DNA of 64,000 nucleotides from Malacoraja senta. Taxonomy: Eukaryota. A program made the translations under genes and the position numbers. The stretch's first letter is position 1; the number at the start of each line of letters is the position of its first letter. Positions 7,797 to 54,141 of the stretch are shown in pieces. The notes beneath the pieces were generated by a model. That model was not told the DNA's origin, did no database searches, and saw only the letters and a list, made by a program, of their open reading frames with translations. The stretch is from the NCBI GenBank assembly GCA_038087875.1, contig JAXLNO010005735.1, forward strand, positions 1 through 64,000, written 5' to 3'.

Positions 7797-7848
7797 ATGC
7801 TTCTTTTTACCTTACTCAACACTTACGGTGTGGCCACTGTCTCCTCTG
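7797..7848 (+). CDS. MHC class I exon 1: signal peptide MLLFTLLNTYGVATVSS
   Basis: ATG at 7797, 17 codons plus G, then donor GTAAGC. Phase 1 joins alpha1 as G+AT=Asp. CCAAT at about 7689 and GGGCGG at about 7782 lie upstream. Confidence 0.75.
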
Positions 7849-8149
7849 GTAAGCAATGCTCCTTCTACTTGTGAACTTTGAGGAAACAACAAAACTGATT
7901 CTATTTACTGTTGCACAGTCCCTGTGTTTGCCCTGGGTACATTGTCTTGGATGTATTAATTGAATGATTGAATTGAATGTATTAATAATTTTGGGTAACG
8001 GTCATTCCTGAGTTGTAAAAGCACCTGTGGGAAGTTATATACACTATGGTTACCTTGGCAATCCAATGAACAGAGGAACTGAATACAGGTAAATAATGAA
8101 CATAGAACATAGGACAATACAGCACAGGAGCAGTTCCTTCAGTCCTTCA

Positions 8150-8183
8150 GTCTGAAGAAGGGTCTCGACCTGAAACGTCACCC
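8150..8183 (+). ncRNA. Minimal type-I hammerhead-ribozyme-like motif in a Penelope-derived repeat
   Basis: CTGAAGA-A-GGGT(CTCG)ACCT-GAAAC-GTC: conserved core, stem II with a G-U closing pair, palindromic ACGT stem III and a GUC cleavage triplet. Confidence 0.6.
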
Positions 8184-8884
8184 ATTCCTTTTATCCAGAG
8201 ATGCTGCCTGACCTGCTGAGTTACTCCAGCATTTTGTCTACCTTCGCCCACAATGTCTGTGCCGAACAAAATAAACTAATCTCCTCTACCTGTATGTGAT
8301 CTGTATCCGGCCATTCCCTGCCTATCTATGTACCTATCTAAAAGCCTCTGAAATGTAACTGTTATATCTGCCACCACCATCACCACCACTGGCAGCGCAG
8401 TACAGGTGTCCACCACCCTCCACATAAAACAACTTGCTCCGCTCATCTCCTTTGAACATTGCTTCTCCAACCTTAAAGTGATGTTCTCTGGTCTTCAACA
8501 TTTCCACCCTGGGAAAAAGGTTCTGGCTGTCCACTCTGTCTGTGCCTCTCACCATGTTATGCACTTTCATCAGGTCTCCCTTCAACCTCCAGTATACAAG
8601 AGAAAACAATCCATGTTTGTCCAATCTGTTCTTGCACTAATACCTCAGACAGAATTCAGGTAAACCGGTGATGTGCACTTTCAATAAAGAAGTGACTTCT
8701 GCATTAGTAGGTGTTCCACCTCTCCAAGATTTCCTCAGCTGGTGTTAGACACCCACATGATGGTAAAATTCAGCCTGCATCAAATGACAAATCAATGTTG
8801 TGTTAATGTTGTTGCCATCTTGTTGTTTGTTGCATGCTTCCTGTACTGCAGACCCTATCCATTACATCACCACCACTTCCATAT

Positions 8885-11755
8885 AACGATATAATCATAT
8901 AACCATTACAGCACGGAAACAGGCCATCTCGGCCCTTCAAGTCCGTGCCGAACACTTTTTTTTTCCTTCCCCCTTCTTTCTTCTTACTTCCCCCTAGTCC
9001 CATCTACCTGCACCCAGACCATATCCTTCCATTCCTTTCCCGTCCATATACCCATCCAATCTATTTTTAAAGGATAAAATCGAACCTGCCTCCACCACTT
9101 CCACTGGAAGCTCATTCCACACAGCTACCACTCTCTGAGTAAAGAAGTTCCCCCTAATGTTCCCCCTAAACTTCTGTCCCTTAATTCTCAAGTCATGTCC
9201 CCTTGTTTGAATCTTCCCTACTCTCAATGGGAAAAGCTTATCCACGTCAACTCTGTCTAACCCGCTCATAATTTTAAAGACCTCTATCAAGTCCCCTCTT
9301 AACCTTCTGCACTCCAAAGAATAAAGCCCTAACTTGTTCAACCTTTCTCTGTAACTTAGTTGCTGAAACCCAGGCAACATTCTAGTAAATCTCCTCTGTA
9401 CTCTCTCTATTTTGTTGACATCCTTCCTATAATTAGGCGACCAAAATAGTACACCATACTCCAGAATTGGCCTCACCAATGCCTTGTACAATTTTAACAT
9501 TACATCCCAACTTCTATATTCAATGCTCTGATTTATAAAGGCCAGCACACCAAAAGCTTTCTTTACCACACTATCTACATGAGATTCCACCTTCAGGGAA
9601 CTATGCACAGTTATTCCTAGATCCCTCTGTTCAACTGCATTCCTCAATTCGCTACCATTTACCATGTACGTCCTATTTTGATTTGTCCTGCCGAGATGTA
9701 GCACCTCACATTTATCAGCATTAAACTCCATCTGCCATCTTTCAGCCCACTCTTCCAAATGGCCTAAATCTCTCTGTAGACTTTGAAAATCTACTTCATT
9801 ATCCACAACACCACCTATCTTAGTATCATCTGCATACTTACTAAATCCAATTTTCCACACCATCATCCAGATCATTGATGTACATGACAAACAACAGTGG
9901 ACCCAACACAGACCCCTGAGGCACCCCACTGGTCACCGGCCTCCAACCTGACAAACAGCCATCCACCATTACTCTCTGGCATCTCCCATTCAGCCACTGT
10001 TGAATCCATCTTGCTACTCCACCATTAATACCGAACAATTGAATCTTCTTAACCAACCTTCCATGAGGAACCTTGTCAAAGGCCTTACTGAAGTCCATAT
10101 AGACAACATCCACTGCTTTACCCTCATCAATTTCGCTAGTAACCTCTTCGCAAAATTCAAGAAGATTAGTCAAACATGACCTTCCAGGCACAAATCCATG
10201 TTGACTGTTCCTAATCAGACCCTGCTTATCCAGATGCTTATATATATTATCTCTAAGTATCCTTTCCATTAATTTGCCCACCACTGACGTCAAACTAACA
10301 GGTCTATAATTGCTTTGTTTACTCTCACAACCCTTTTTAAACAACGGAACAACATGCGCAGTACGCCAATCCTCCGGCACTATTCCTGTAACAATGACAT
10401 TTGAAATATTTTTGTCATAGCCCCTGCTATTTCTACACTAACTTCCCTCACTGTCCTAGAAAATATCCTGTCAGGACCTGGAGACTTATCCATTTTCATA
10501 TTTTTCAAAAGTGTCCGCACCTCCTCTTATTTGAATCTCATAGTTTCCATTGCTACTCTGCTTGTTTCCCTTACCTCACATAATTCCATATCCTTCTCCT
10601 TGGTGAATACCGAAGAAAAAAAATTGTTCAATATCTCCCCCATCTCTTTTGGCTCTGCAGATAGCTGTCCACTCTGACTCTCTAATGGACCAATTTTATT
10701 CCTTGTTATCCTTTTTCTATTAATATAGCTGTAGAAACCCTTTGGATTTACTTTCACCTTACTTGCAAAAGCAACCTCATATCTTCTTTTAGCTTTTCTA
10801 ATTTATTTCTTAATATTCTTTTTACATTCTTTATACTCCTCAAGCACCTCATTTACTCCATGCTGGCAATAATTATTGTAGATCTCTCTCTTTTTCCGAA
10901 CCAAGTGTCCAATTTCCCTTGAAAACCATGGCTCTTTCCAATTTTTACTATTTCCTTTCAACCGAACAGGGACATAAAGATTCTGTACTCTTAAAATGTC
11001 ACCTTTAAATGTCCTCCATTTCTCTACTACATCCTTCCCATAAAACAACATGTCCCAATTCACTCCTTTTAAATCCTTTCGCATCTCCTCAAAGTTAGAC
11101 TTTCTCCAATCAAAAATTTTAACCCTAGGTCCAGTTCTGATCCTCTCCATAATTATATTGAAACTAATGGTATTGTGATCACTGGACCCGAAGTGCTCCC
11201 CAACGCCCACCTCCGCCACCTGCCCTGTCTCATTTCCTAACAGGAGGTCCAGCACTGCCCCTTCTTTAGTAGGTACCTCTATGTATTGCTGCAAAAAACT
11301 ATCCTGCGCACATTTTACAAATTCCAAACCATCCAGCCCTTTTACAGTATGTGTTTCCCAGTCTAAGTGTGGAAAATTGAAATCTCCCACAATCACTACC
11401 TTGTGCTTACTACTAATATCTGCTATCTCCTTACATATTTGCTCTTCCAATTCTTGCTCCCCATTAGGCAGTCTATAATACACCCCTATATGTGTTGCTA
11501 CACCTTTCCCATTTCTCAGTTCCACCCAAATAGCCTCCCTAGACGAGCCCTCTACTCTATCCTGCCAAAGCACTGCTGTAATATCTTCCTTGACAAGCAA
11601 TGCAACACCCCCACCTCTTGACCCTCCAATTCTATCACACCAGAAGCAACGAAATCCTGGAATATTTAGTTTCCAATCACAGCCCTCCTGCAACCATGTG
11701 TCACTGATCGCCACAACAACATACTTCCAGGTGTCAATCCAGGCTCTATCCACGA
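8885..11755 (-). mobile_element. Near-complete CR1 ORF2 (AP endonuclease plus RT) with 3' UTR, few frameshifts
   Basis: ORFs 10803-11753 (APE: ISDTWL, VGDFNFP, LDLLL, SDHN), 10527-10757, 9841-10380 and 8994-9929 ([20 protein letters not shown]). Antisense in class I intron 1. Confidence 0.97.
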
Positions 11756-12877
11756 CTTCCCCAGAAGACGATAATGAGATTTAAGAAGCTTGAGGATAGG
11801 CACGTGGATATGTAGGGACTTGAGGGATATGAATCATGTACAAGCAGTTTAGTTTAACTTGACATCATGTTCGGCACAGACATTGTGGCTGAGCTCTAAC
11901 CCATTACACCCTTAATGAACAAAAATATATCAATCTAAATCTGGAAATTTTCAAGTGGGCGACATATTCAACAGATTACAGAATCGAGCACCAGAAGACA
12001 TAGGTTTAAATTGAGGGGGGGGGGAGATTTAATGGGAATCTGATGAGCAATTTCTTCCCACACAATGCTTCCTTTCTAACTATTCTGACAATCGTGAAGG
12101 CTTGGAGATTACAAACCTACTCATCCTGAAAGTTTAATCCCATTGTTATCAGATGAAAGTAAATATAAAATGGTGATTCCCCTGTTGAAATAATAACATA
12201 TAAAACAAAAATCCTTGGTTGTGGAGTGTTTTGGGAAGTCACGTGGATTTTATCATTACTGTATTCCACTAGCCTTCTTATGTTTCTCCTGGTAACACTG
12301 AAACAGACACTTCTAACTCTCCCTTTGGGGCCCCTTCTCACCTCACTTTGACACTGAACTTTGACACTGTCTGGTGTGCTGCATGGAAACTTTATCACAG
12401 AACAAATACTGCTTATTCATGTAGAAACAAGAAAATGCAGATGCTGGTTAATACACATAAAATGCTGGAGTAATTCAGCAGGTCAGGCAGTATGTCTGGA
12501 GAACATGGATAGGTGATGTTTCAGTTTAGACATCAGTTTAGATGTGTAAGAAGGAACTGCAGATGCTGATTTAAACCGAAGATAGACACAAAAAGCTGGA
12601 GTAACTCAGCGGGACAGGCAGCATCTCTGGAGAGACGAAATGGGTGATGTTTCGCGTCTAGACCCTTCTTCAGACTGGTGATGCAGATGCTGGTTTACAC
12701 CGAAGATAGACACAAAAAGCTGGAGTAAATCAGGAAGTCAGGCAGCATCGCTGGAGAAAAGGAATAGATGGCGTTTCAGGTCAAGGCACTTCTTCAGACA
12801 GAGTCGGGGGTATATCTTTTATTAATTTGTTCTATGTACCTTTTCATATCGCTTGGTTCCCTGTCTCCTGATTCTCA

Positions 12878-12910
12878 GTCTGAAGAAGGGTCTCGACCCG
12901 AAACGTCACC
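12878..12910 (+). ncRNA. Minimal type-I hammerhead-ribozyme-like motif (best-conserved copy)
   Basis: GT-CTGAAGA-A-GGGT(CTCG)ACCC-GAAAC-GTC-ACC: intact core, 4-bp stem II, ACGT palindrome. Stem I is only 2 bp. Confidence 0.65.
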
Positions 12911-13346
12911 TTTTCCTTTTCTCCGGAGATGCTGCCTGACCCACTAAGTTACTCCAGTATGTGTCGAGTTTCAGTTTAGACCCTGTTTATTATAGTCTGC
13001 TCCGACCCCACCCCCACCCCCCACCCCACCCAAGCCTTGATAGTCGGGACTTATCAGTAAGGTCTTCTTTACACTTACTGTTACAGAATCCCAATGTCCT
13101 CATAAGTCAGAAGTGCCCCATTCCATGCAGAGATTTCCCACCAGATGGGCATTTCAGGGTTGCAGCTCATAGAGATGGTGCCTATGAGGACCTGGACTCA
13201 ATCCCGATCTCTACTACAACCTGTGTGGCACTTTTATTCTTTCCCTGAAACCATGTGTGCTTCCTCTGGTTATTCCAGTTTCTCCCAATATTCCAAAGAT
13301 GCCTGGGCTGAGAGGTAAATTGGCCAGTGTGAATTGATCGTACATA

Positions 13347-14878
13347 CTGTGACCTCCATAATGTTTCGGACAAAGACCCATCATATATTTATTTGCCTCT
13401 GTACTCCATAATTTGAGATTTGTAATAGAAAAAAATCACATGTGGTTAAAGTGCACATTGTCAGATTAAAAAAAAGGCAATTTTTTAAACATTTTGGTTT
13501 CACCATGTAGAAATTACAGCAGTCAATTTACATAGTCACAAAATACATAGTCTGCCCCATTTTAGGGCACCATAATGTTTGGGACACAGCAATGTCATGT
13601 AAATGAAAGTAGCCATGTTTAGTATTTTGTTGCATATCCTATGCATGCAATGACTGCTTGAAGTCTGTGATTCATGGACATCGCCAGTTGCTGGGTGACT
13701 TCTCTGGCGATGCTCTGCCAGGCCTGTATTGCAGCCTGTGCTTGTTTTGGGGGCTAGTCCCCATTCAGTTTTCTCTTTGGCATATCAAAGGCATGCTCAG
13801 TTGCGTTCAGATCGGGTGATTGTCTTGGCCACTCAAGAATTAACAATTTTTTAGCTTTGAAAAACTCCTTTGTTGCTTTAGGATCATTGTCTTGCTGTAG
13901 TATGAACCGCTGGGCAATGTGTTTTGAGGCCAATGTGTTTGAACTTGAGCATATAGGATGTGTCTATACACTTCAGAATTCATTATGCTGCTACCATCAG
14001 TAGCTGAATGGTCAACAAAGCTAAGTTAGCCAGTACCTTCAGCAGCCATACATGCCCAGCCCACAACACCCCCACCACCGTGTTTCACAGATGAGGTGGT
14101 ATGCTTTGGATCTAGGGCAGTTCCTTCTCTCCTCCATACTTTGCTCTTGGCATCACTCCGATATAAGTTAATCTTTGTATCATCTGTCCAGAAGACCTTT
14201 TTCCAGAACTATGGTTGCTCTTTTAAGTACTTCTTGGCAAACTGTAACCCGGCCATCCTGTTTTTGCGGCTAAACAGTGGTTTGCATCTTGCAGTGCAGT
14301 CTCTGTATTTCTGTTCATGAAGTCTTCTGCGGACAGTGGTCATTGGCAAATCCACACCTGACTCCTGATGAGTGTTTCTGACCTGTCAGTCCCTTTGCGA
14401 TTAGTAAAGGATTGGGGTTTTGTCTTTATTATAGAGATAAGTCTTCTGTCATCAGCTGTGGAGGTGTTCCTTGGCCAGCCAGTCCCTTTGCGATTAGTAA
14501 GCTCACAGTGCTCTCTTTCTTCTTAATGATGTTCCAAACAGTTTGATTTTGGTAAGCCTAAGGTTTGGCTGATGTCTCGAACAGTTTTATTCTTGTTTCT
14601 CAGTCTCATAATGGTCTCTTTTACTTTCATTGGCACAACTCTGGTCCTCCTGTTGATGAACAGCAATAAAAGTTTCCAAAGGTGATGGAAAGACTGGAGG
14701 AAAGACTAGATGCTGAGTTCTCTTATACCTGCATTAAGGAGGCATTTAAATACCCCTGAGCAATTACATACATCTGCGAAGCCATGTCCCAAACATTATG
14801 GTGCCCTGAAATGGGGGGACTATGTATAAACACAGGTGTAATTTCTACATGGTGAAACCAAAATGAGCAAAAAATGAA
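13347..14878 (-). mobile_element. Tc1/mariner transposon remnant, IR/DR type
   Basis: Left end TA|CTGTGACCTCCATAATGTTT; direct repeats CCATAATGTTT(C/G)GGACA at about 13356 and 13570; inverted copy at 14785-14801. Minus strand encodes a degenerate HTH (IMRLRNKNKTVRDISQTLGLPKS) and C-terminus (AAIQAWQSI..MSMNHRLQAVIAC). Right end truncated by a CR1 fragment. Confidence 0.88.
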
Positions 14879-15462
14879 TACATAAGTTTAAAATGAGGGG
14901 GGAAAGATTTAATAATAACCAGAGGCATAGCTTTGGTGGGAGTACTGAATGAACTGCCGGAGAAGGGAGTTCAGGCAGGTACTATCGCAACATTTAAGAA
15001 ACATTTAATCTGGTACATGGATAGATAGGTTTAGAAGGATATGGGCCTCCTCAGACAGCCGTGGAGCCCACGTCAATGGATATTTCTCAGGTGGATATTG
15101 ACAGATTCTTGATCAGTATGGGTGTCAAGGGTTATGGGGCGAAAGCAGGGAATGTGGTTGAGAGGGCGAGATAGAGCAGCCATGATTGAATTAGGCCATT
15201 CAGCCGTAGGCCCTGATTCCCTGCTGTATGACTCTTTGACTTTACCTCTCTATGATTTTATAAAATCTCCTTGACGTTGTCCATTTTCTTAATATAATAA
15301 AATATTCTTTGAATTTTGGAATATTGTAACTAGTAGGCTGTATCGACATGATAGATAATAATAGATCTTTGAAGATGGGAAGCAATCCAATAGGATCATT
15401 CAATACCTCGACCACAATTGGTGGAATAGGTATCAGAGCCCATCTAGCCAACTCTTGTAGAA

Positions 15463-15780
15463 GGCTCAGTGGTGCAGCATTAGAGATGCTGCCTTATCGC
15501 CCTTACAGCACCAATGCCCAGGTTGGATCCTGACTACGGGTCCTGTCTGTATGGAGTTTGTACATTCTCCACCTGACCGGGTGGGTTTTTCCTGAGATCT
15601 TCAGATTCTTCCCACATTCCATGACGTACAGGTTTGTAGTTTAATTGGCTTGGTGTAGAATGTAAATTGTCCCTTGTGTGTGTAGGATAGTGTTAGCGTG
15701 TGGGGGTTGCTGGTCAGTGTGGACTCAGTGGCCCGAAGGGCCTGTTTCCATGCTGTATCTCTAAGCTAAAAACTAAACTA
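15463..15780 (+). mobile_element. HE1-type tRNA SINE
   Basis: A box AGTGGTGCAGC, B box GGTTGGATCC, conserved central domain and CR1-like tail. Confidence 0.8.
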
Positions 15781-15967
15781 AAGGCTCCTGACACAAATTG
15801 TCACCTGATCATTGATGCTGCCTGCCCCACTGAGTTCATCCAGCACTTGCATCTGCAGGTCCTTGTGACTCCCTTATTCAAAGTCATTGTATTGTTATCA
15901 GTTTAATAACTTTTAGTTATTTTCAGTGAATGATACAATCATATTTATTATTGTTTATGAATTGCAG

Positions 15968-16228
15968 ATTTACACCATCTTGCATTTTACTACCTGTTGA
16001 ACCATGGATTGAATGAGCTGCCTGAGTACAGTATGGTAGCAATGCTGGATGACGTCCAGATAGCATATTTTGACAGCACACTAGAGCGGGCTGTTCCCAG
16101 ACAGCGATGGATGGCCCAGTCTTTCCCGCAGGATCACTGGGATTCAATGGCCATAACAGTTGCAGGTTTTCATGGGATTGTCAGAGGAAATGCTGAGATA
16201 GTCTACCAACAGCAACATGGTATCTCGA
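15968..16228 (+). CDS. MHC class I exon 2: alpha1 domain
   Basis: TTGCAG|...|GTAAGT, 261 nt. DLHHLAFYYLLNHGLNELPEYSMVAMLDDVQIAYFDSTLERAVPRQRWMAQSFPQDHWDSMAITVAGFHGIVRGNAEIVYQQQHGIS, with class I PE..., DD...YFDS and PRQRW motifs. Confidence 0.95.
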
Positions 16229-16916
16229 GTAAGTGTCATGACCGGACCTGGGGTAGACACCCAGTGATGGAACAAATGGATTTTGTTTTAGTTTTGTTGC
16301 TGTCACATGATTCTCTGATACACTTTTTTTGCATGTTAGTCAATCACATCAAAGAAAACTATTCATAAATGCAATCAAACCAAACTCGTACAATAGGTAG
16401 AGCAAAGAGTGCAGAATGTAGTTCTCAGCATTGTAAGGCACCAGTGCCAGAGACAAAGTCCAGTGTCTACAATGGGGTTGAGGAGAACCCTAGCATAAGG
16501 GAGGACTGTTCATAAACCAGACAACATAGGGGAGGAAACAGTTACTGAGTCTGGTGGTGCACGCTTTAATGCTTACGTACCTTCTGCAGGAAGAAGAAGG
16601 AATGACCAGAGCGGGATGAATCTTTGATTATGTTGTCTGCTTTCCTGAACCAGTTGAAATACAGGTGGATTCACTGGTGGGGAATCATGTTTGTGTGATC
16701 GACTGTGCTACATCTCCACCTCCCTGCAATTTCCAGCGGTCTTGGGCAGAACTCTTTCCAAACTAAGTTGTGATACAACCTGTCAGTATGCTTTCTATGG
16801 CACATTTGTAGACGTTTGTAAGAGTCATTGGAGATGCCGCATTTCCTTAGTCTCCTGAGGCAGTAGGGGAACCAGAAACTCTCAACCTTTTTCACTTCAG
16901 CACCATTGATGTAGCA

Positions 16917-17946
16917 ATGTTACAAAATTTTGAGATTTTAAAAATAAAGTCTGCAATTTATCCCATCAGATAAAGCATAAAAGGAAGTTTAATTTGACAC
17001 CTAATTCACTTTCATATCTTCAGTATTAAAGAAGTTATGGCCATCTTGTTCCCTATTGCTTTTCCATTGACTTAACACAAAAGCTGTGATCGAGGACAGT
17101 CAAAAGCCCATAACTTTCTTAAAAATTAAGATAACTGAAAGACATTTTCAGTTATTATAGATTGAAGCATTCTGAAACAAATATGAAACAATCTTACTTA
17201 GAAGACATGAAAGTATGGATGACTTGAAATTAAAGCATATAATTAGTTAGTTACCTAATTGTAGCTAATTACAAAATTCAATTACTAGATCTAAACATCT
17301 ATCAATTTCTTAAGAATAGATTAACATTTTTAAATAGCCTAAGTGTCCAAATAACATTCACACAATAATTCACAATATAACATAACTTTTAAATCTCATT
17401 TTCATGAATTTACAGGCCAAATGGAAGGAATTGAATGTTTAATACCTGTAAATTAATGGGCATTTAATTCATTTTGCGAGTGAGGATTTCTGGAACGCGA
17501 TCATTTGGAACGTTCATTTGCGGTGAATTTAACCCCGTATTGGCATGAAAAATACTGCCGTTAGTTCGGGGAATAAAATCACCGTGTCGCATGAAAAAAT
17601 GTGAATTAAAGGCTTCTTAAGAAGCACTTTTATACATTTAAAGAAACCACTTTCGTTTACCTGTCCCGTGTGTGAAATCCGTCCCCGTTATCGGCGTTGA
17701 CGCTTCAGGAGCTGCTTTTAAAATTACTCTAGCGCTGACATTGACGATTTAATAAAAATAAAAAATTCACAAAACGCCGGTAGGAACGATTCATCAGCCA
17801 GCGCTTGGACTCCAACAAAATATTAACTAGGACAAGGAAGGAGAAACCCGCGTTTTAACCCCGCCCCCCCTTAAAGGCGCCAAAATCGCGCATACGGCCA
17901 GTGGCAGAATTACAGCGCGACAGAAGGTAGGTTTTGTAACATACCT
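16917..17946. mobile_element. About 1-kb non-autonomous DNA transposon of unknown superfamily
   Basis: Terminal inverted match ATGTTACAAAA (16917) / TTTTGTAACAT (17932-17942), with the right end continuing ACCT. AT-rich body, CpG-rich right subterminus, no ORF. Confidence 0.6.
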
Positions 17947-19013
17947 AATTGATGCTGTTTCAGACATTTACTCCATCACATTTTGATAGAGACACGGCCC
18001 ATCGTCTATATTTAATGTGTCCTAACTGCTGAACACCCATTGATAACAGTTGGCTGGTGATAGTCTCTTTATGGGTTAAGCATTTGATATTTAACACCAG
18101 TAAAAAGTGGATGGATTGGATCATCTGTTTTATTGGGCTGGAATGAGGGAGAAACCATTAGTTTATTTATAGCCTGATCATCTAGAGATGGGACCTTGAT
18201 TTAAGCTGGTTGATGGTGACTATGATGTATTCCCTCAACAATAATATTCTGTTAATCCAGCATTCCCTCAATATTGGCAGCAATCCACAGAGAGTGTAGC
18301 AATCCCACACTGTGCAACAGCCTTGATGTACTACCCATCTGCATTGCCTTAACCTTGAGACTGACCTGTTCACTGTATAACATTGCCCATTTGACAATGC
18401 ACTCCTTCCTCTGTTCTTTATGTACGAAAGTGCAGAATCTGAGTTCTACCCTTCTGACACAGCAAAACTCCTTTAGTGTTACATCCACAACAGTAAAGCT
18501 TCCCCCCTCAACACTTGAGGTTAGTCCATGCCCTCAGTATATAGACCATGGGTCATTGAGTCACACATCATGGAAACCGGCCCTTCTGCTCACTGAATCC
18601 ACACTGATCATCCATTGTGCTAAGATGGAGTCACAGCAAACTGCAGATGCTGCCAATCTGAATTTAAAACAAACAGGAGGAACTCAACGTGTCAGGCAGC
18701 ATGCTGTGGACAAATGGACAGAAAACATATGAGACCAGGACCATTTAGAGTGATGGAGTAGGGTGGAGAAAGCTGGAAAGAAAAGTAGTCTGTGTAGGAT
18801 AGTGTTAATATGCGGGGACCACTGGTCAGTGCGGACTCGGTGGGCCGAAGGACCTGTTTCGGCGCTGTATCTCTGAACTAAACCTGCTCCTGTGCTGTAC
18901 AGCTCTATGTTGTGTTCTGTTATGCCTGTTTGTACCATGCTGAGAACTGATTTGTAAATTGCCTCTCCCTTCCATCCACTCACCCCAACCCAAATCCTCC
19001 ACCCCTACCTCAG

Positions 19014-19295
19014 CCCAAGCTGTTTTCTTTGTGCAGGGTTTCTGCGGCTGTGAAGTGGACAGTGACAATTCCACTGATGGGTTTGTCAGACTGGGTTATG
19101 ATGGGGAGGATGCCTGTGCTTTTGACAAGGACAGAATGTTCTGGATTGCACTACGTCCAGATTTCCAGATGCTAGCAGATCGGTGGAACGTCAACACCTT
19201 CATGAACAAGTATTTTAAAGATCTCCTGGAGAAGGACTGTGTGAAGTGGCTGCGGATATATCTGGAGTGTGGACAAGAAGCACTACAGAGGAGAG
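19014..19295 (+). CDS. MHC class I exon 3: alpha2 domain
   Basis: CTCAG|...|GTACAC, 282 nt. TQAVFFVQGFCGCEVDSDNSTDGFVRLGYDGEDACAFDKDRMFWIALRPDFQMLADRWNVNTFMNKYFKDLLEKDCVKWLRIYLECGQEALQRR, with the conserved C101/C164 pair, YDG.D, W147 and WL..YL. Confidence 0.95.
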
Positions 19296-20501: not shown

Positions 20502-20777
20502 AAACCTCTGAGGTGTTTATTGGGATTAAAAGTGATGGGTCGCAATCACTGAGACTCTCCTGCCTTGTCACAGGCTTCTAGCCACGGGCCATCGATGTAA
20601 CGTGGCTGAGAGATGGTGAGGGGGTCCACAAGTCTGAATCCAGTGATGATCTGTTGCCCAATTGGGATGGGACTTACCAGCTGAAGAATACAATTCAACT
20701 GAGTAGAGAAGATGTGGCAAAATTCTCCTGTTACATCGAACATGCAACTCTGCTGCAGGGAGTCAATGTTCCACAGG
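20502..20777 (+). CDS. MHC class I exon 4: alpha3 C1-set Ig domain with an in-frame TAG at 20579-20581
   Basis: TTGCAG|...|GTAAGT, 276 nt. ETSEVFIGIKSDGSQSLRLSCLVTGF*PRAIDVTWLRDG..LLPNWDGTYQLKNTIQL..KFSCYIEHATL. Confidence 0.95.
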
Positions 20778-23798: not shown

Positions 23799-24028
23799 AG
23801 ATGGCAGCGAAAGAAGATATAAAGATTAGGATCGTGACTGGAGCTGTAATTGTTCCTCTTATTCTCCTGGGGATCATCCTTGGAATTGGTTGCTGGAAGA
23901 AGAGGAAAAAGATGAAACCTTTCAATGAACAGGGACCAGCTGACAACAGCAGAGACCAGCAGCGGACTGCAGTGACCATGAAGCACAATCAGCTTCCGTT
24001 GGGATACAGAGGAGGTCTACCGGAATGA
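23799..24028 (+). CDS. MHC class I exon 5: connecting peptide, transmembrane helix and cytoplasmic tail
   Basis: CAACAG| phase 1. EMAAKEDIKIR-IVTGAVIVPLILLGIILGIGCW-KKRKK (stop-transfer)...LGYRGGLPE*. No strong internal donor seen. Confidence 0.85.
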
Positions 24029-44711: not shown

Positions 44712-45752
44712 ACATGTTTAAGAAAGAACTGCAGATGCTGGAAAAATCCAAGGTGGACAAAAATGCTGGAGAAACTCAGCGGTGAGGCAGCATCTATGGA
44801 GCAAAGGAATAGGTGACGTTTTGGGTCGAGACCCTTCTTCAGACTGATATGGGGGTGGGGGGCGGGAAGAAGAAAGGAAGAGGTGGAGATAGTAGGCTGT
44901 GGGAGAGCTTCGAAGGGAAGGGGAAGGAGGGAGAAAGCAAAGACTACCTGAAAATGGAGGTCAATGTTCATACCGCTGGGGTGTAAACTACCCAAGCGAA
45001 AAATGATATTCTGCCCCTCCAATTTGCGGAGGGTCTTACTCTGGCGTGGAGGAGACCCAGGACAGAAAGGTCCGATTCTGAATGGGAGGGGGAGTTGAAG
45101 TGTTGAGCCACTGGGAGATCAGGTTGGTTAATGTGGACTGAGCGGAGGTGTTGGGTGAAGCGATCGCCAAGCCTGCGCTTGGTCTCACCGATGTAAAGCA
45201 GTTGACACCTAGAGCAGCGGATGCAATAGATGAGGTTGGAGGAGGGGCAGGTGAACCTCTGCCTCACTTGGAAAGACTGCTTAGGCCCTTGGATGGAGTC
45301 ATGGGGGGAGATAAAGCGACAAGTGTAGCATTTCCTGCGGTTGCAAGGGAAAGTGCCAGGGGAGGGGAAGGTTAGGGAACGGGGCTTCTTCTCTTCGACT
45401 ATAGATGAGGCTCTCACCAAGGTCTCTTCTATATCTCGTTGCTCCGCTCTCACTCCCCATTCCCCCCACTCGTGACAAGTCCCCCTTGTCCTCACCTTCC
45501 ACCCTACCAGCCGTCACATACAACAGATAATCCTCCGACATATTCGCCACCTCCAACGGGATCCCATCACTGGCCACATCTTCTCATCTTCTCCCCTTTC
45601 AGCTTTCTGCAGAGACTGCACCCTCTGTAACTCCCTGGTCAATGTGTCCCTTCCCACCCAAACCACTCCCTCCCCTGGTACTTTCCCTTGCCACCGCAGG
45701 AAATGCTACACTTGTCGCTTTACCTCCCCCCTTGACTCCATCCAAGGACCTA
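44712..45752. mobile_element. Penelope-like element: GIY-YIG endonuclease and terminal repeat on the minus strand (44712-45385) with an inverted ORF fragment on the plus strand (45430-45752)
   Basis: ORF 44968-45495: FPCNRRKCYTC..NLIYCIRC..LLYIGETKRRLGDRFTQH. The plus segment repeats PSPGTFPCHRRKCYTC..DSIQGP. Confidence 0.93.
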
Positions 45753-50860: not shown

Positions 50861-53800
50861 CAAGATGGCGCCTGCCTGCGGCGACTTTTGCGGAGCACCA
50901 GAACAGAAAAGGTTCACCTACAACTTCTATCAACTTACCTGCATCAGGGAAACGGCAGTAATCGGTGCCGTTTCAGACAAGCTGCTTGGGCAGCTGAATG
51001 TGCTGGCAATTTCGCGATCTCCCACAGCTGCGGGAGCCCCGGACTTTAAATTTTCCCACGCTGGCTGTGGAACTCCCGACCCGACTGAGGATCCCAGGTA
51101 CTGTACCTGGGAACCCCGGGATCACCTCCAGAGCCCACAGGCCGGATCTCCCAGGAACAATGAAGCTGGAGCTGCCGACTTTGAATGTACCCCCATTCGT
51201 TACGGAGCTGGAGCTGCCGTCTGTGAAGGAATCCCCGTCCCAGCGCAGGTCCGCAGAATCAGCAGGTACAGTGGACTCAGCACCTGGAAACAAAGGGGAA
51301 GCCTCCATTGTGTCCGGAAACGTGGCCGACGGGCAGGACTTCAGGTCAGACTGAAGCGCAGGGGACTTCGGCCCCCTCTCCCTACTATCCTACTGGCCAA
51401 CGTATAAAGTGGAGGACTTAAGGCAAGACTGCTTTATCAAAGTGAGCTGAGGGAATGACTGTGTTCTGTTTCACAGAGACATGGCTCACCCCCAGCTCCC
51501 CAGATTCAGCGGTCCAGCCTGAAGGGTTCTCCATCCATCGTATGGACCGTACACTGGCATCTGGGAAAGGGAGAGGAGGGGGCGTCTGCCTCATGGTCAA
51601 CTCTGCGTGGTGCTCAGACGTGGCAGTCCTGTCCAACTCCTGCTCTCCACACCTCGAACATCTGGCAGTGAAGTGTCGTCCCTTCTACCTTCCGAGGGAA
51701 TTCACCTCCATCATCATGACCGCGGTCTACATCCCACCCCAGGCAGACCTCCGTCTGGCACTGGGGGAGCTGCACGCCGTGGTAAACAAACACCAGACGT
51801 CTTACCCCGAGGCGTTTACCACCATAGCCGGGGACTTCAATAAGGCAAACCTAAAGAAATCACTCCCTAACTTCCACCAACATTTCTCCTGCTGCACCAG
51901 AGGATCAAACACCCTCGACCACTGCTACACAACCATCAAGAATGCCTATCGTTCTATCCCTCGCCCTCACTTCGGTAAATCTGACCATACCGCGGTGCTG
52001 CTGCTTCCTGCCTACAGGCAGCAATTAAAGAGCGCACCACTAGAGGTGTTACACTGTACAGAGCTGGTCGAGGGGGGCAGAGGAACAACTCCAGGACAGT
52101 TTGGAGTCTGTAGACTGGGCAATGTTCAAGGACTCGGCAACGGACCTGAACGAATACGCCACAGTCGTTACAGACTTCATTAAGAAGTGTGTGGACTGCA
52201 TCCCCACCAAAACCTTCCGAGCGTTTCCCAATCAGAAACCTTGGATGAACTTTGAGATCCGCACTCTTCTGAAGTCCAGACACCGGGCATTCATGTCTGA
52301 TGATACAGTGGCCTACAAGGAGTCCAGATACGACCTTGGTAAGGCCATCAAAAAGGCCAAAAGGGACTTCTGCTCCAAACTGGAGGAAGAGACTGATGTT
52401 CGCCGGCTGTGGCAGGGCCTGAATGCAATCACCTCTTACAAGGCGAAATCAGGAGGCAGCTCGAATGTCGGCGAAACATCACTCCCTGATGAGCTCAATG
52501 CGTTTTACGCACGCTTTGATAGGGAGAACACCGATGTGCCTTGCCGAGCCCCCATTCGCTGTGATGGTATTTCAGTCTCAGTCACAGAGGCCGACGTCAG
52601 GAAATCCTTCAGAGGGGTGAACCCTCGAAAAGCGCCTGGACCTGATGGTATACCTGGTCGCGTTCTAAAAACCTGTGCGGACCAACTGGCTGGAGTTTTT
52701 ACAGACATTTTCAACCTCTCACTTCTGAGGTCTGAGGTCCCCACCTGCTTCAAAAGGGCATCAATTATACCAGTGCCCAAGAAGAGTAAGGTAACGTGCC
52801 TCAATGACTATCGACCTGTGGCACTAACGCCTGTGGTGATGAAGTGCTTTGAGAGGTTGATCATGACGCAGATCAACTCCTACCTCGACAAAAACCTGGA
52901 CCCACTGCAGCTCGCTTACCGCCACAACAGATCAACGGTGGATGTGATCTCGCTGGCCCTCCACTCCGCTCTGGACCACTTGGACAACAAAAACTCATAT
53001 GTCAGGCTGTTATTCATCGATTACAGCTCGGCATTTAACACAATCATCCCCTCCAAGCTGGTTACCAAACTCGCAGAACTGGGTCTCTGCGCATCCCTCT
53101 GCAATTGGATCCTTGACTTCCTCACTCTCAGACCACAGTCTGTTCGTATTGGTGGAAATGTGTCAGACTCGATAACAATTAGCACGGGAGCACCTCAAGG
53201 CTGCGTGCTCAGTCCCCTGCTGTACTCACTCTATACTCATGACTGCGTAGCCGGACATAGTGCGAACTCCATCATCAAGTTCGCTGATGACACCACTGTT
53301 GTGGGACGTAGCACTGATGGGGATGAGTCAGAGTATAGAAGAGAGATCGAGCAACTGTCCATATGGTGCCAGCACAATAACCTGGCCCTCAACACCAGCA
53401 AAACCAAGGAACTGATTGTGGACTTTGGAAGGAGTAGGATGGGGACCCACAGTCCCGTTTATATCAACGGGTCGATGGTTGAAAGGGTCAAGAGCTTCAA
53501 ATTCCTGGGCGTGCACATCTCTGAAGATCTTTCCTGGTCCGAGAACAATGATGCCATTATTAAGAAAGCACATCAGCGCCTCTACTTCCTGAGAAGATTA
53601 CGGAGAGTCGGTTTGTCAAGGAGGACTCTCTCTAACTTCTACAGGTGCACAGTAGAGAGCATGCTGACCGGTTGCATCGTGGCTTGGTTCGGCAACTTGA
53701 GTGCCCTGGAGAGGAAAAGACTACAAAAAGTAGTAAACACTGCCCAGTCCATCATCGGCTCTGACCTCCCTTCCATCGAGGGGATCTACCACAGTCGCTG

Positions 53801-54141
53801 CCTCAAAAAGGCTGGCACCATCATCAAGGACCCACACCATCCTGGCCACACACTCATCTCCCTACTACCTTCAGGTAGAAGGTACAGGAGCCTGAAGACT
53901 GCAACGACCAGGTTCAGGAACAGCTACTTCCCCACAGCCATCAGGCTATTAAACCTGGCTCGGACATAACACTGAACTTTACTAGCCAATATGTTATTTG
54001 CACTTTATCAGTATATTGACCATTGTGTATATATTTATAGAATGCCTTGTAGTAAATGCCTACTATGTTCTGTTGTGCTCAAGCAAAGCAAGAATTTCAT
54101 TGTCCTACCAGGGACACATGACAATAAACTCACTTGACTTG
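50861..54141 (+). mobile_element. Near-full-length Rex1/Babar non-LTR retrotransposon (APE plus RT), about 2 frameshifts
   Basis: Starts CAAGATGGCG. ORFs 50865-51407, 51455-52183 (FTETWL, AGDFN, TLDHCY, SDH) and 52101-53969 (LLFIDYSSAFNTI, KFADDTT). Tail GACAATAAA..(CTTGA)n. AAC on both sides. Confidence 0.96.

Follow-up and report, generated by a model that had tools for sequence, protein, structure and literature searches.

Of the vertebrates alive today that have a major histocompatibility complex (MHC), sharks and rays are the most ancient. Two of their nonclassical class I lineages, UFA and UGA, have been described as MHC-linked, low-copy and CD1-like, with crystal structures and mass spectrometry indicating that they bind lipids (2025 review, PMC12562908), and the same CD1-like, lipid-binding account of UFA is given by Verissimo 2023 (PMC10751288). 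UDA is described as a single-copy gene of the same MHC-Ib cluster. Here we analyze a class I gene in a 64,000-nucleotide stretch of the Malacoraja senta genome (assembly GCA_038087875.1, contig JAXLNO010005735.1, positions 1 to 64,000; hereafter the window). An earlier reading of the letters of the window (hereafter the original prediction) had proposed a divergent nonclassical class I molecule with a groove built for a hydrophobic, non-peptide ligand, from either a CD1-analogous or an unassigned lineage. We find that the gene is a member of an elasmobranch MHC-Ib lineage, here labelled W, which is conserved, already stands in public annotation and goes by the name 'MR1-like' in RefSeq. With good confidence we regard it as a genuine five-exon W gene, from a lineage that is sister to UGA and that would bind an apolar ligand, and this particular copy as most likely dead.

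The window is repeat-rich vertebrate sequence with a G+C content of about 44%. By tblastn and six-frame reading it contains one class I gene, on the plus strand and in five exons, and no further class I exon. Exon 1 (7797..7848) carries the start codon and signal peptide (MLLFTLLNTYGVATVSS) and ends in a phase-1 donor (exonic G followed by intronic gtaagc); the same leader exon is present in the little skate at L001:100-151. Exon 2 (15968..16228, 261 nucleotides; acceptor ttgcag, donor gtaagt) encodes alpha1, which matches Pfam MHC_I and the UGA crystal structure, PDB 9ch4 (E 3e-22). Exon 3 (19014..19295, 282 nucleotides; acceptor cctcag, donor with exonic GAGAG before intronic gtacac) encodes alpha2 (Pfam MHC_I, E 2e-16). 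Exon 4 (20502..20777, 276 nucleotides) encodes an alpha3 immunoglobulin C1-set domain (C1-set E 2e-8; 9ch4 E 9e-13) that carries a one-codon insertion (SSDD). Exon 5 (23799..24028) encodes the connecting piece, the transmembrane helix and the cytoplasmic tail, its frame open up to the TGA at 24026-24028. All five exons are joined in phase 1, and the introns are GT-AG. Weaker or shorter boundaries exist for the two groove domains: an alternative donor at 16219 in exon 2 and an alternative acceptor at 19019 in exon 3 (start at 19020), both in frame, the latter restoring the standard 276 nucleotides. Our model takes the longer boundaries, whose splice signals are better and which agree with the linker of five residues in the sawfish orthologue. 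The locus thus encodes PF00129 alpha1 and alpha2 domains, a C1-set alpha3 domain and a transmembrane segment, with one domain per phase-1 exon, as expected of class I, and the disulfide cysteines fall at the expected positions (Cys101-Cys164 and Cys203-Cys259).

To place the gene, we ran an exhaustive HMMER search with its alpha1 domain over 1.84 billion representatives. It returned a single close representative, XP_055486430.1 of Leucoraja erinacea (P0001), at about 94-95% identity; the next-closest single-domain matches were UGA-type proteins at 44-47%. In little skate, the locus L001 shows all five exons and runs collinear with the window, at a nucleotide identity of 86-93%, and the window protein is 92% identical to the little-skate model. 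Divergence of this size points to a different but related skate as the source of the window, or to a diverged paralogous region. The RefSeq version of P0001 runs 12 codons into the intron after alpha2 (residues 182-193, GTRPRHSDWWNG) and is without the leader exon. A search with P0001 recovered orthologues at 54-72% identity in Pristis, Mobula, Hypanus, Pristiophorus, Heptranchias and Scyliorhinus as well as in Stegostoma, Hemiscyllium, Mustelus, Cetorhinus and Chiloscyllium, after which identity fell sharply to 36% or less. RefSeq contains W orthologues from 12 other elasmobranchs, most of them with a single gene. Heptranchias perlo (the P0168 cluster) has eleven W proteins with over 90% identity to one another, spread across at least seven contigs, so W is not single-copy everywhere, unless these models are assembly duplicates. 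Leucoraja erinacea has a second, fragmentary W model on another scaffold (P0177, XP_055486496.1), with a truncated alpha2 and an altered alpha3, from which skates seem to carry extra, decaying W copies.

The only sawfish gene of that RefSeq name in the supplement of Verissimo 2023 (taken as the gene of P0164) is marked MHC-Ib. It lies on chromosome 34 at 13.96 Mb, between brd2 (13.0 Mb) and rxrb (15.5 Mb), and is followed by three more MHC-Ib genes; the W lineage is therefore MHC-linked. The lineage as a whole is not unassigned in the sense then proposed, since its orthologues already stand in RefSeq for those 12 elasmobranchs and the sawfish one is listed as MHC-Ib.

We then built a quick tree of 116 rows, a careful tree of 63 rows (LG+C20) and separate domain trees, all without MR1, HLA, EPCR and most CD1 sequences. 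The window protein groups with little skate (100/100), within the batoids (100/98) and within the W clade (100/100), which unites the window with little skate, sawfish, manta, stingray and eight shark proteins, and whose batoid and shark subclades match taxonomy. In the careful tree, W is sister to the clade of PDB 9ch4 relatives (99/94), and an 8gm8-like shark lineage joins W and UGA next (93/73). The domain phylogenies envisaged in the original prediction bear this out in part: W pairs with UGA in alpha1 (support 97) and alpha2 (82), but the tree of alpha3 alone is unresolved, and there W pairs weakly (61) with three class I genes of Callorhinchus milii and not with UGA. This pull of alpha3 towards Callorhinchus, which is not significant, could reflect a holocephalan relative or exon exchange.

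Membership of W in UGA or UFA was considered and rejected, as species carry both W and UGA and the trees split them. W and UGA are reciprocally monophyletic (100/100 and 100/99; the UGA clade holds P0006, P0007 and P0011/P0162), and W is not UGA because the two are only 37-40% identical over the ectodomain and both genes occur in little skate and in sawshark. We found no published name for W: the database names are generic, the Verissimo 2023 supplement says only 'MHC-Ib', and a search of the ESM Atlas gave generic class I clusters only. W may be UDA, or it may be unnamed.

What sets the lineage apart is its groove. We aligned 116 class I ectodomains with MAFFT and scored 35 standard pocket positions on the Kyte-Doolittle scale. 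The 20 classical-like sequences show YYRTKWYY in the eight anchor columns, at the expected places, and this confirms that the columns are mapped correctly. In three loop regions the HLA-A2 numbers hinge on the placement of one- or two-residue gaps, with the anchor columns fixed. In these columns the window protein has F7, H59, Q84, L143, R146, W147, L159 and Y171, and it has A123 besides. Only two of the eight anchors that hold peptide termini in classical class I are kept (W147 and Y171), and every substitution listed in the original prediction reappears in the alignment. The same is true of all 13 hydrophobic residues it had placed in the groove (M63, V67, F70, I73, V74, I80, V81, V95, V114, L116, M152, F156 and L159). 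Over the whole pocket, 28 of the 35 positions are hydrophobic and three are charged. The mean Kyte-Doolittle value is 1.43 for the window and 1.47 for the W lineage, as against 0.92 for the 8gm8-like lineage, 0.63 for UGA-like and -0.18 for classical-like sequences. W has the most hydrophobic groove among the 116 sequences and holds 12 of the top 14 ranks, so the groove pattern is real and far beyond chance.

The residues on the floor of the W groove are small: Gly97, Cys99, Ala123, Ala34 and Ala45 (an Ala at the position of Met45, or of Lys43 in MR1). Cys99, encoded in the window at 19044-19046 (within GFCGCEV), is invariant in all 13 W sequences, at a position occupied by Phe in UGA and by Tyr in classical molecules. 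It is unpaired, as only Cys101 and Cys164 have a standard partner, and its free thiol, which from the sequence would face the groove, may serve in ligand capture or may merely provide space. The ligand-binding domains are also strongly conserved. Across the 13 W sequences, 79 of the 176 positions of alpha1 and alpha2 are invariant and the groove string nearly so, and identity between batoids and sharks is 0.67 in alpha1 and 0.73 in alpha2, compared with 0.58 in alpha3. Such strong conservation of ligand-binding domains is a feature associated with MR1 and CD1d.

An AlphaFold2 model of the little-skate ectodomain (mean predicted local distance difference test score, pLDDT, 89.1) has class I topology, with normal, unkinked helices at pLDDT above 90. 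Its best fold match is 9ch4 (Foldseek template modelling score 0.86/0.93; VIA-align Z 28.2), whose entry is titled 'Crystal structure of shark nonclassical MHC CLASS I, UGA'. In the Foldseek ranking, MR1 chains come directly after UGA, and CD1 chains fall below peptide-binding class I. With its anchors lost, its groove exceptionally hydrophobic and conserved, and UGA its nearest relative by search, trees and fold alike, the molecule is the divergent nonclassical class I that had been proposed.

Since W is sister to a lineage reported to bind lipids, a hydrophobic, non-peptide ligand is a reasonable inference by analogy with UGA. To this extent the ligand suggested in the original prediction stands; its alternative of an unassigned lineage does not, as the lineage is already annotated, and W is not CD1. 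By this account, W would be a putative beta2-microglobulin-associated surface molecule that holds a conserved, hydrophobic, lipid-like ligand in its apolar groove and shows it to a conserved receptor. The cytoplasmic tails suggest where loading would occur. We found no YxxPhi or dileucine motif in the seven W tails checked, nor in the tail of the window gene itself, whereas skate UGA tails carry YQNI. From the missing tyrosine sorting motif, loading would take place in the secretory pathway or at the cell surface and not in endosomes. Taken further, W might represent a third lineage of CD1- or MR1-like presenters, older than the split of sharks and rays and sister to UGA yet mechanistically distinct, with an apolar groove, Cys99, and non-endosomal loading of one ligand for an invariant receptor, and its locus might be duplicated here with some copies recently dead; this fuller scheme we put forward only tentatively.

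A different explanation of the same groove is that it is closed or empty, its apolar residues packing against each other, and that W is a ligand-free receptor ligand or carrier in the manner of HFE, FcRn, MIC or ZAG. Closed-groove class I-like proteins do also have hydrophobic groove residues, and conserved helices would fit a fixed protein-protein interface equally well. The floor residues listed above, however, are of a kind that makes space instead of filling it, the modelled helices lack any kink, and the sister lineage is reported to hold lipids, all of which makes a closed groove improbable. We retain an apolar ligand as the preferred reading.

That reading concerns the lineage; the copy in the window is another matter. 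Just beyond the range covered by the original prediction (which ends at 19295), an in-frame TAG on the plus strand at 20579..20581, codon 225 of 366, replaces the Tyr of the conserved alpha3 motif GFYP. The codon is TAC in little skate, and the residue is Tyr in 11 of the 11 other orthologues aligned. This TAG is the sole disabling lesion of the gene, exon 5 being open, and it sits 196 nucleotides upstream of the last exon junction. Under the usual rule, nonsense-mediated decay acts on stops more than 50-55 nucleotides before that junction. The messenger RNA should therefore undergo decay, and the change from TAC to TAG should in any case truncate the protein before most of the immunoglobulin domain and the membrane anchor. 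With such a stop in alpha3, this copy is probably no working presenter. We queried with 61 bases around 20581, chosen so that the G of the TAG is part of each 31-mer, and the sequence is present in contigs of two runs, X1 and X2, which come from two samples of the same species, so a random consensus error is unlikely.

Comparison with little skate points the same way for alpha3. At a synonymous divergence (dS) of 0.078 the ratio of nonsynonymous to synonymous rates (dN/dS), calculated from small counts, is 0.62 overall, 0.39 in alpha1 and alpha2 together, and 1.37 in alpha3. The changes derived in the window lie more often at sites that are conserved elsewhere: F2L and L169R (HLA-A2 numbering), Pro to Ser at the junction of alpha2 and alpha3, Tyr to stop, the one-codon insertion, and Arg to Met in the connecting piece. 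This pattern fits a recent loss of constraint, in numbers too small for a test. Judged from its sequence, this copy most likely represents either a recently arisen null allele or a duplicate that has become a pseudogene.

Some observations weigh against the reading of a dead copy in a lineage that binds apolar ligands. The lipid claim for UGA in PMC12562908 cites a personal communication. Class I structures all score Z of about 26-28 against the model, so that UGA is not set apart from peptide binders and the backbone does not discriminate function. Runs X1 and X2 may derive from the assembled individual and hence are perhaps not independent. Finally, when amino-acid changes are polarised by eleven other species, 11 are derived in the window and 11 in little skate; with this balance, if constraint has relaxed at all it did so recently, and the support for it is weak.

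One rival possibility is that the copy is functional after all, the TAG being a mistake of the assembly or a null allele that is rare at a working locus, or alpha3 being skipped. With every exon in phase 1 and alpha3 at 276 nucleotides, skipping would keep the frame and give an alpha1-alpha2-transmembrane protein. The lesion is single, the four remaining exons are uninterrupted and have good splice sites, and the low dN/dS of alpha1 and alpha2 and the balance of derived changes would both suit a working gene. Set against this are the presence of the TAG in contigs of both samples, the invariance of the Tyr in the aligned orthologues, and the insertion and raised dN/dS in alpha3, and we consider a functional copy unlikely. 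A dead or dying copy of a W gene remains our preferred reading of the locus.

The window also contains retroelement sequences. Intron 1, 8 kb long, contains a degenerate long interspersed nuclear element (LINE) on the minus strand (8878..11753), with endonuclease and reverse-transcriptase open reading frames (Pfam Exo_endo_phos and RVT_1) broken into three. The element is absent from the orthologous intron of little skate, and collinearity between the window and L001 shows a gap from window position 8878 to 11750. Of the other long open reading frames in the window, some are fragments of LINE or Penelope-like elements and the rest match nothing in Pfam. One LINE on the plus strand, at 51455-53969, has a long open reverse-transcriptase reading frame (622 amino acids; RVT_1 E 4e-32) with an ALKBH8_N-like tail, is preceded by an endonuclease-like open reading frame, and looks far younger than the broken element in intron 1. 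An open reading frame on the minus strand at 44968-45495 weakly matches the GIY-YIG nuclease family (E 2e-4, narrowly missing the Pfam cut-off) and is probably a fragment of a Penelope-like retroelement.

If there are indeed several ancient non-peptide lineages (UFA, UGA and W), presentation of lipids or small molecules would be about as old as presentation of peptides, which bears on when CD1- and MR1-like functions arose. To that question the window contributes little, since many genomes already have predicted members of this lineage and the copy here is broken. It is of use as a dated case of a gene dying in a duplicated MHC-Ib region, and it points to intact orthologues such as the sawfish XP_051899694 and the little-skate gene. 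The novelty is modest, given that the lineage is annotated already and stands beside a crystallised relative, UGA.

How, then, does W compare with the presenters that are known? Outside mammals, MR1 is to our knowledge not known. We compared W with MR1 by HMMER alignment to PDB chains. Human MR1 is the best PDB sequence match of W alpha2 (E 1e-16), and the alignment between them has no gaps; a whole shark W orthologue scores about 170 bits against MR1 and 142 bits against shark classical class I. W also resembles MR1 in the length of the alpha1 40s loop, in high conservation and in low copy number. The residues with which MR1 holds its ligand are nevertheless replaced in W (Lys43, the residue that captures ligand as a Schiff base, by Ala or Cys, Arg94 by Gly, Tyr62 by Met, Trp69 by Phe or Leu, and Ile96 by Cys), and the window has Tyr at position 9 in place of the Arg9 of MR1. 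Judged on these residues, W is not MR1. That W is nonetheless an MR1-type presenter of small polar metabolites, or an unusual peptide binder, is very unlikely, for the sequence match to MR1 and the rank of MR1 chains next to UGA in Foldseek are outweighed by the replaced ligand residues, the loss of six of the eight peptide anchors, a pocket in which only three of 35 residues are charged, and the fact that RefSeq gives the name 'MR1-like' to many unrelated shark class I genes.

With CD1, which occurs in mammals, birds and reptiles, W has in common a class I-like heavy chain, an apolar groove without anchors, and ligand-binding domains more conserved than the immunoglobulin domain, and the function proposed for W is analogous. 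There is no specific sequence kinship: the CD1 family PF16497 scores 23 bits on the window against a cut-off of 35, and the sole CD1 match is at 27% identity (E 5e-12). CD1b, CD1c and CD1d also carry a YxxPhi tail motif, which is missing from the W tails checked, and W, by contrast, lies inside the MHC. On sequence grounds, W is not CD1. Chicken YF1*7.1 offers an analogy only (Z 27 against the W model, 29% identity): this nonclassical molecule combines a hydrophobic groove with a backbone of classical-like form and, by the titles of 9eb2-9eb6, presents N-acylated ligands.

Closer kin are found among the elasmobranchs themselves. The 8gm8-like shark lineage is the third elasmobranch lineage with an apolar groove and groups with W and UGA, but it is about 30% identical to W, its alpha2 helix is very different, and it has lost W147 and Y171; it may be UFA. 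UGA differs from W in keeping Y7 and Y59, both replaced in W, in having F99 in place of Cys99, in keeping an N-glycan site near position 86, in the YQNI endosomal motif of its skate members, and in a less apolar groove. At the same time, AGFHG in alpha1 and MN(K/R)YFKxLLExDC in alpha2 are motifs common to W and UGA, as are the groove residues L5, Y9, T66, F70, Q84, G97, L116, A123, W147, M152, Y155, F156, L159, D163 and Y171. Of these, M152, Y155, F156, L159 and D163 belong to the alpha2 helix, where L160 is shared too, and G97 and A123 are small residues of the floor. The W and UGA genes are neighbours in a little-skate scaffold.

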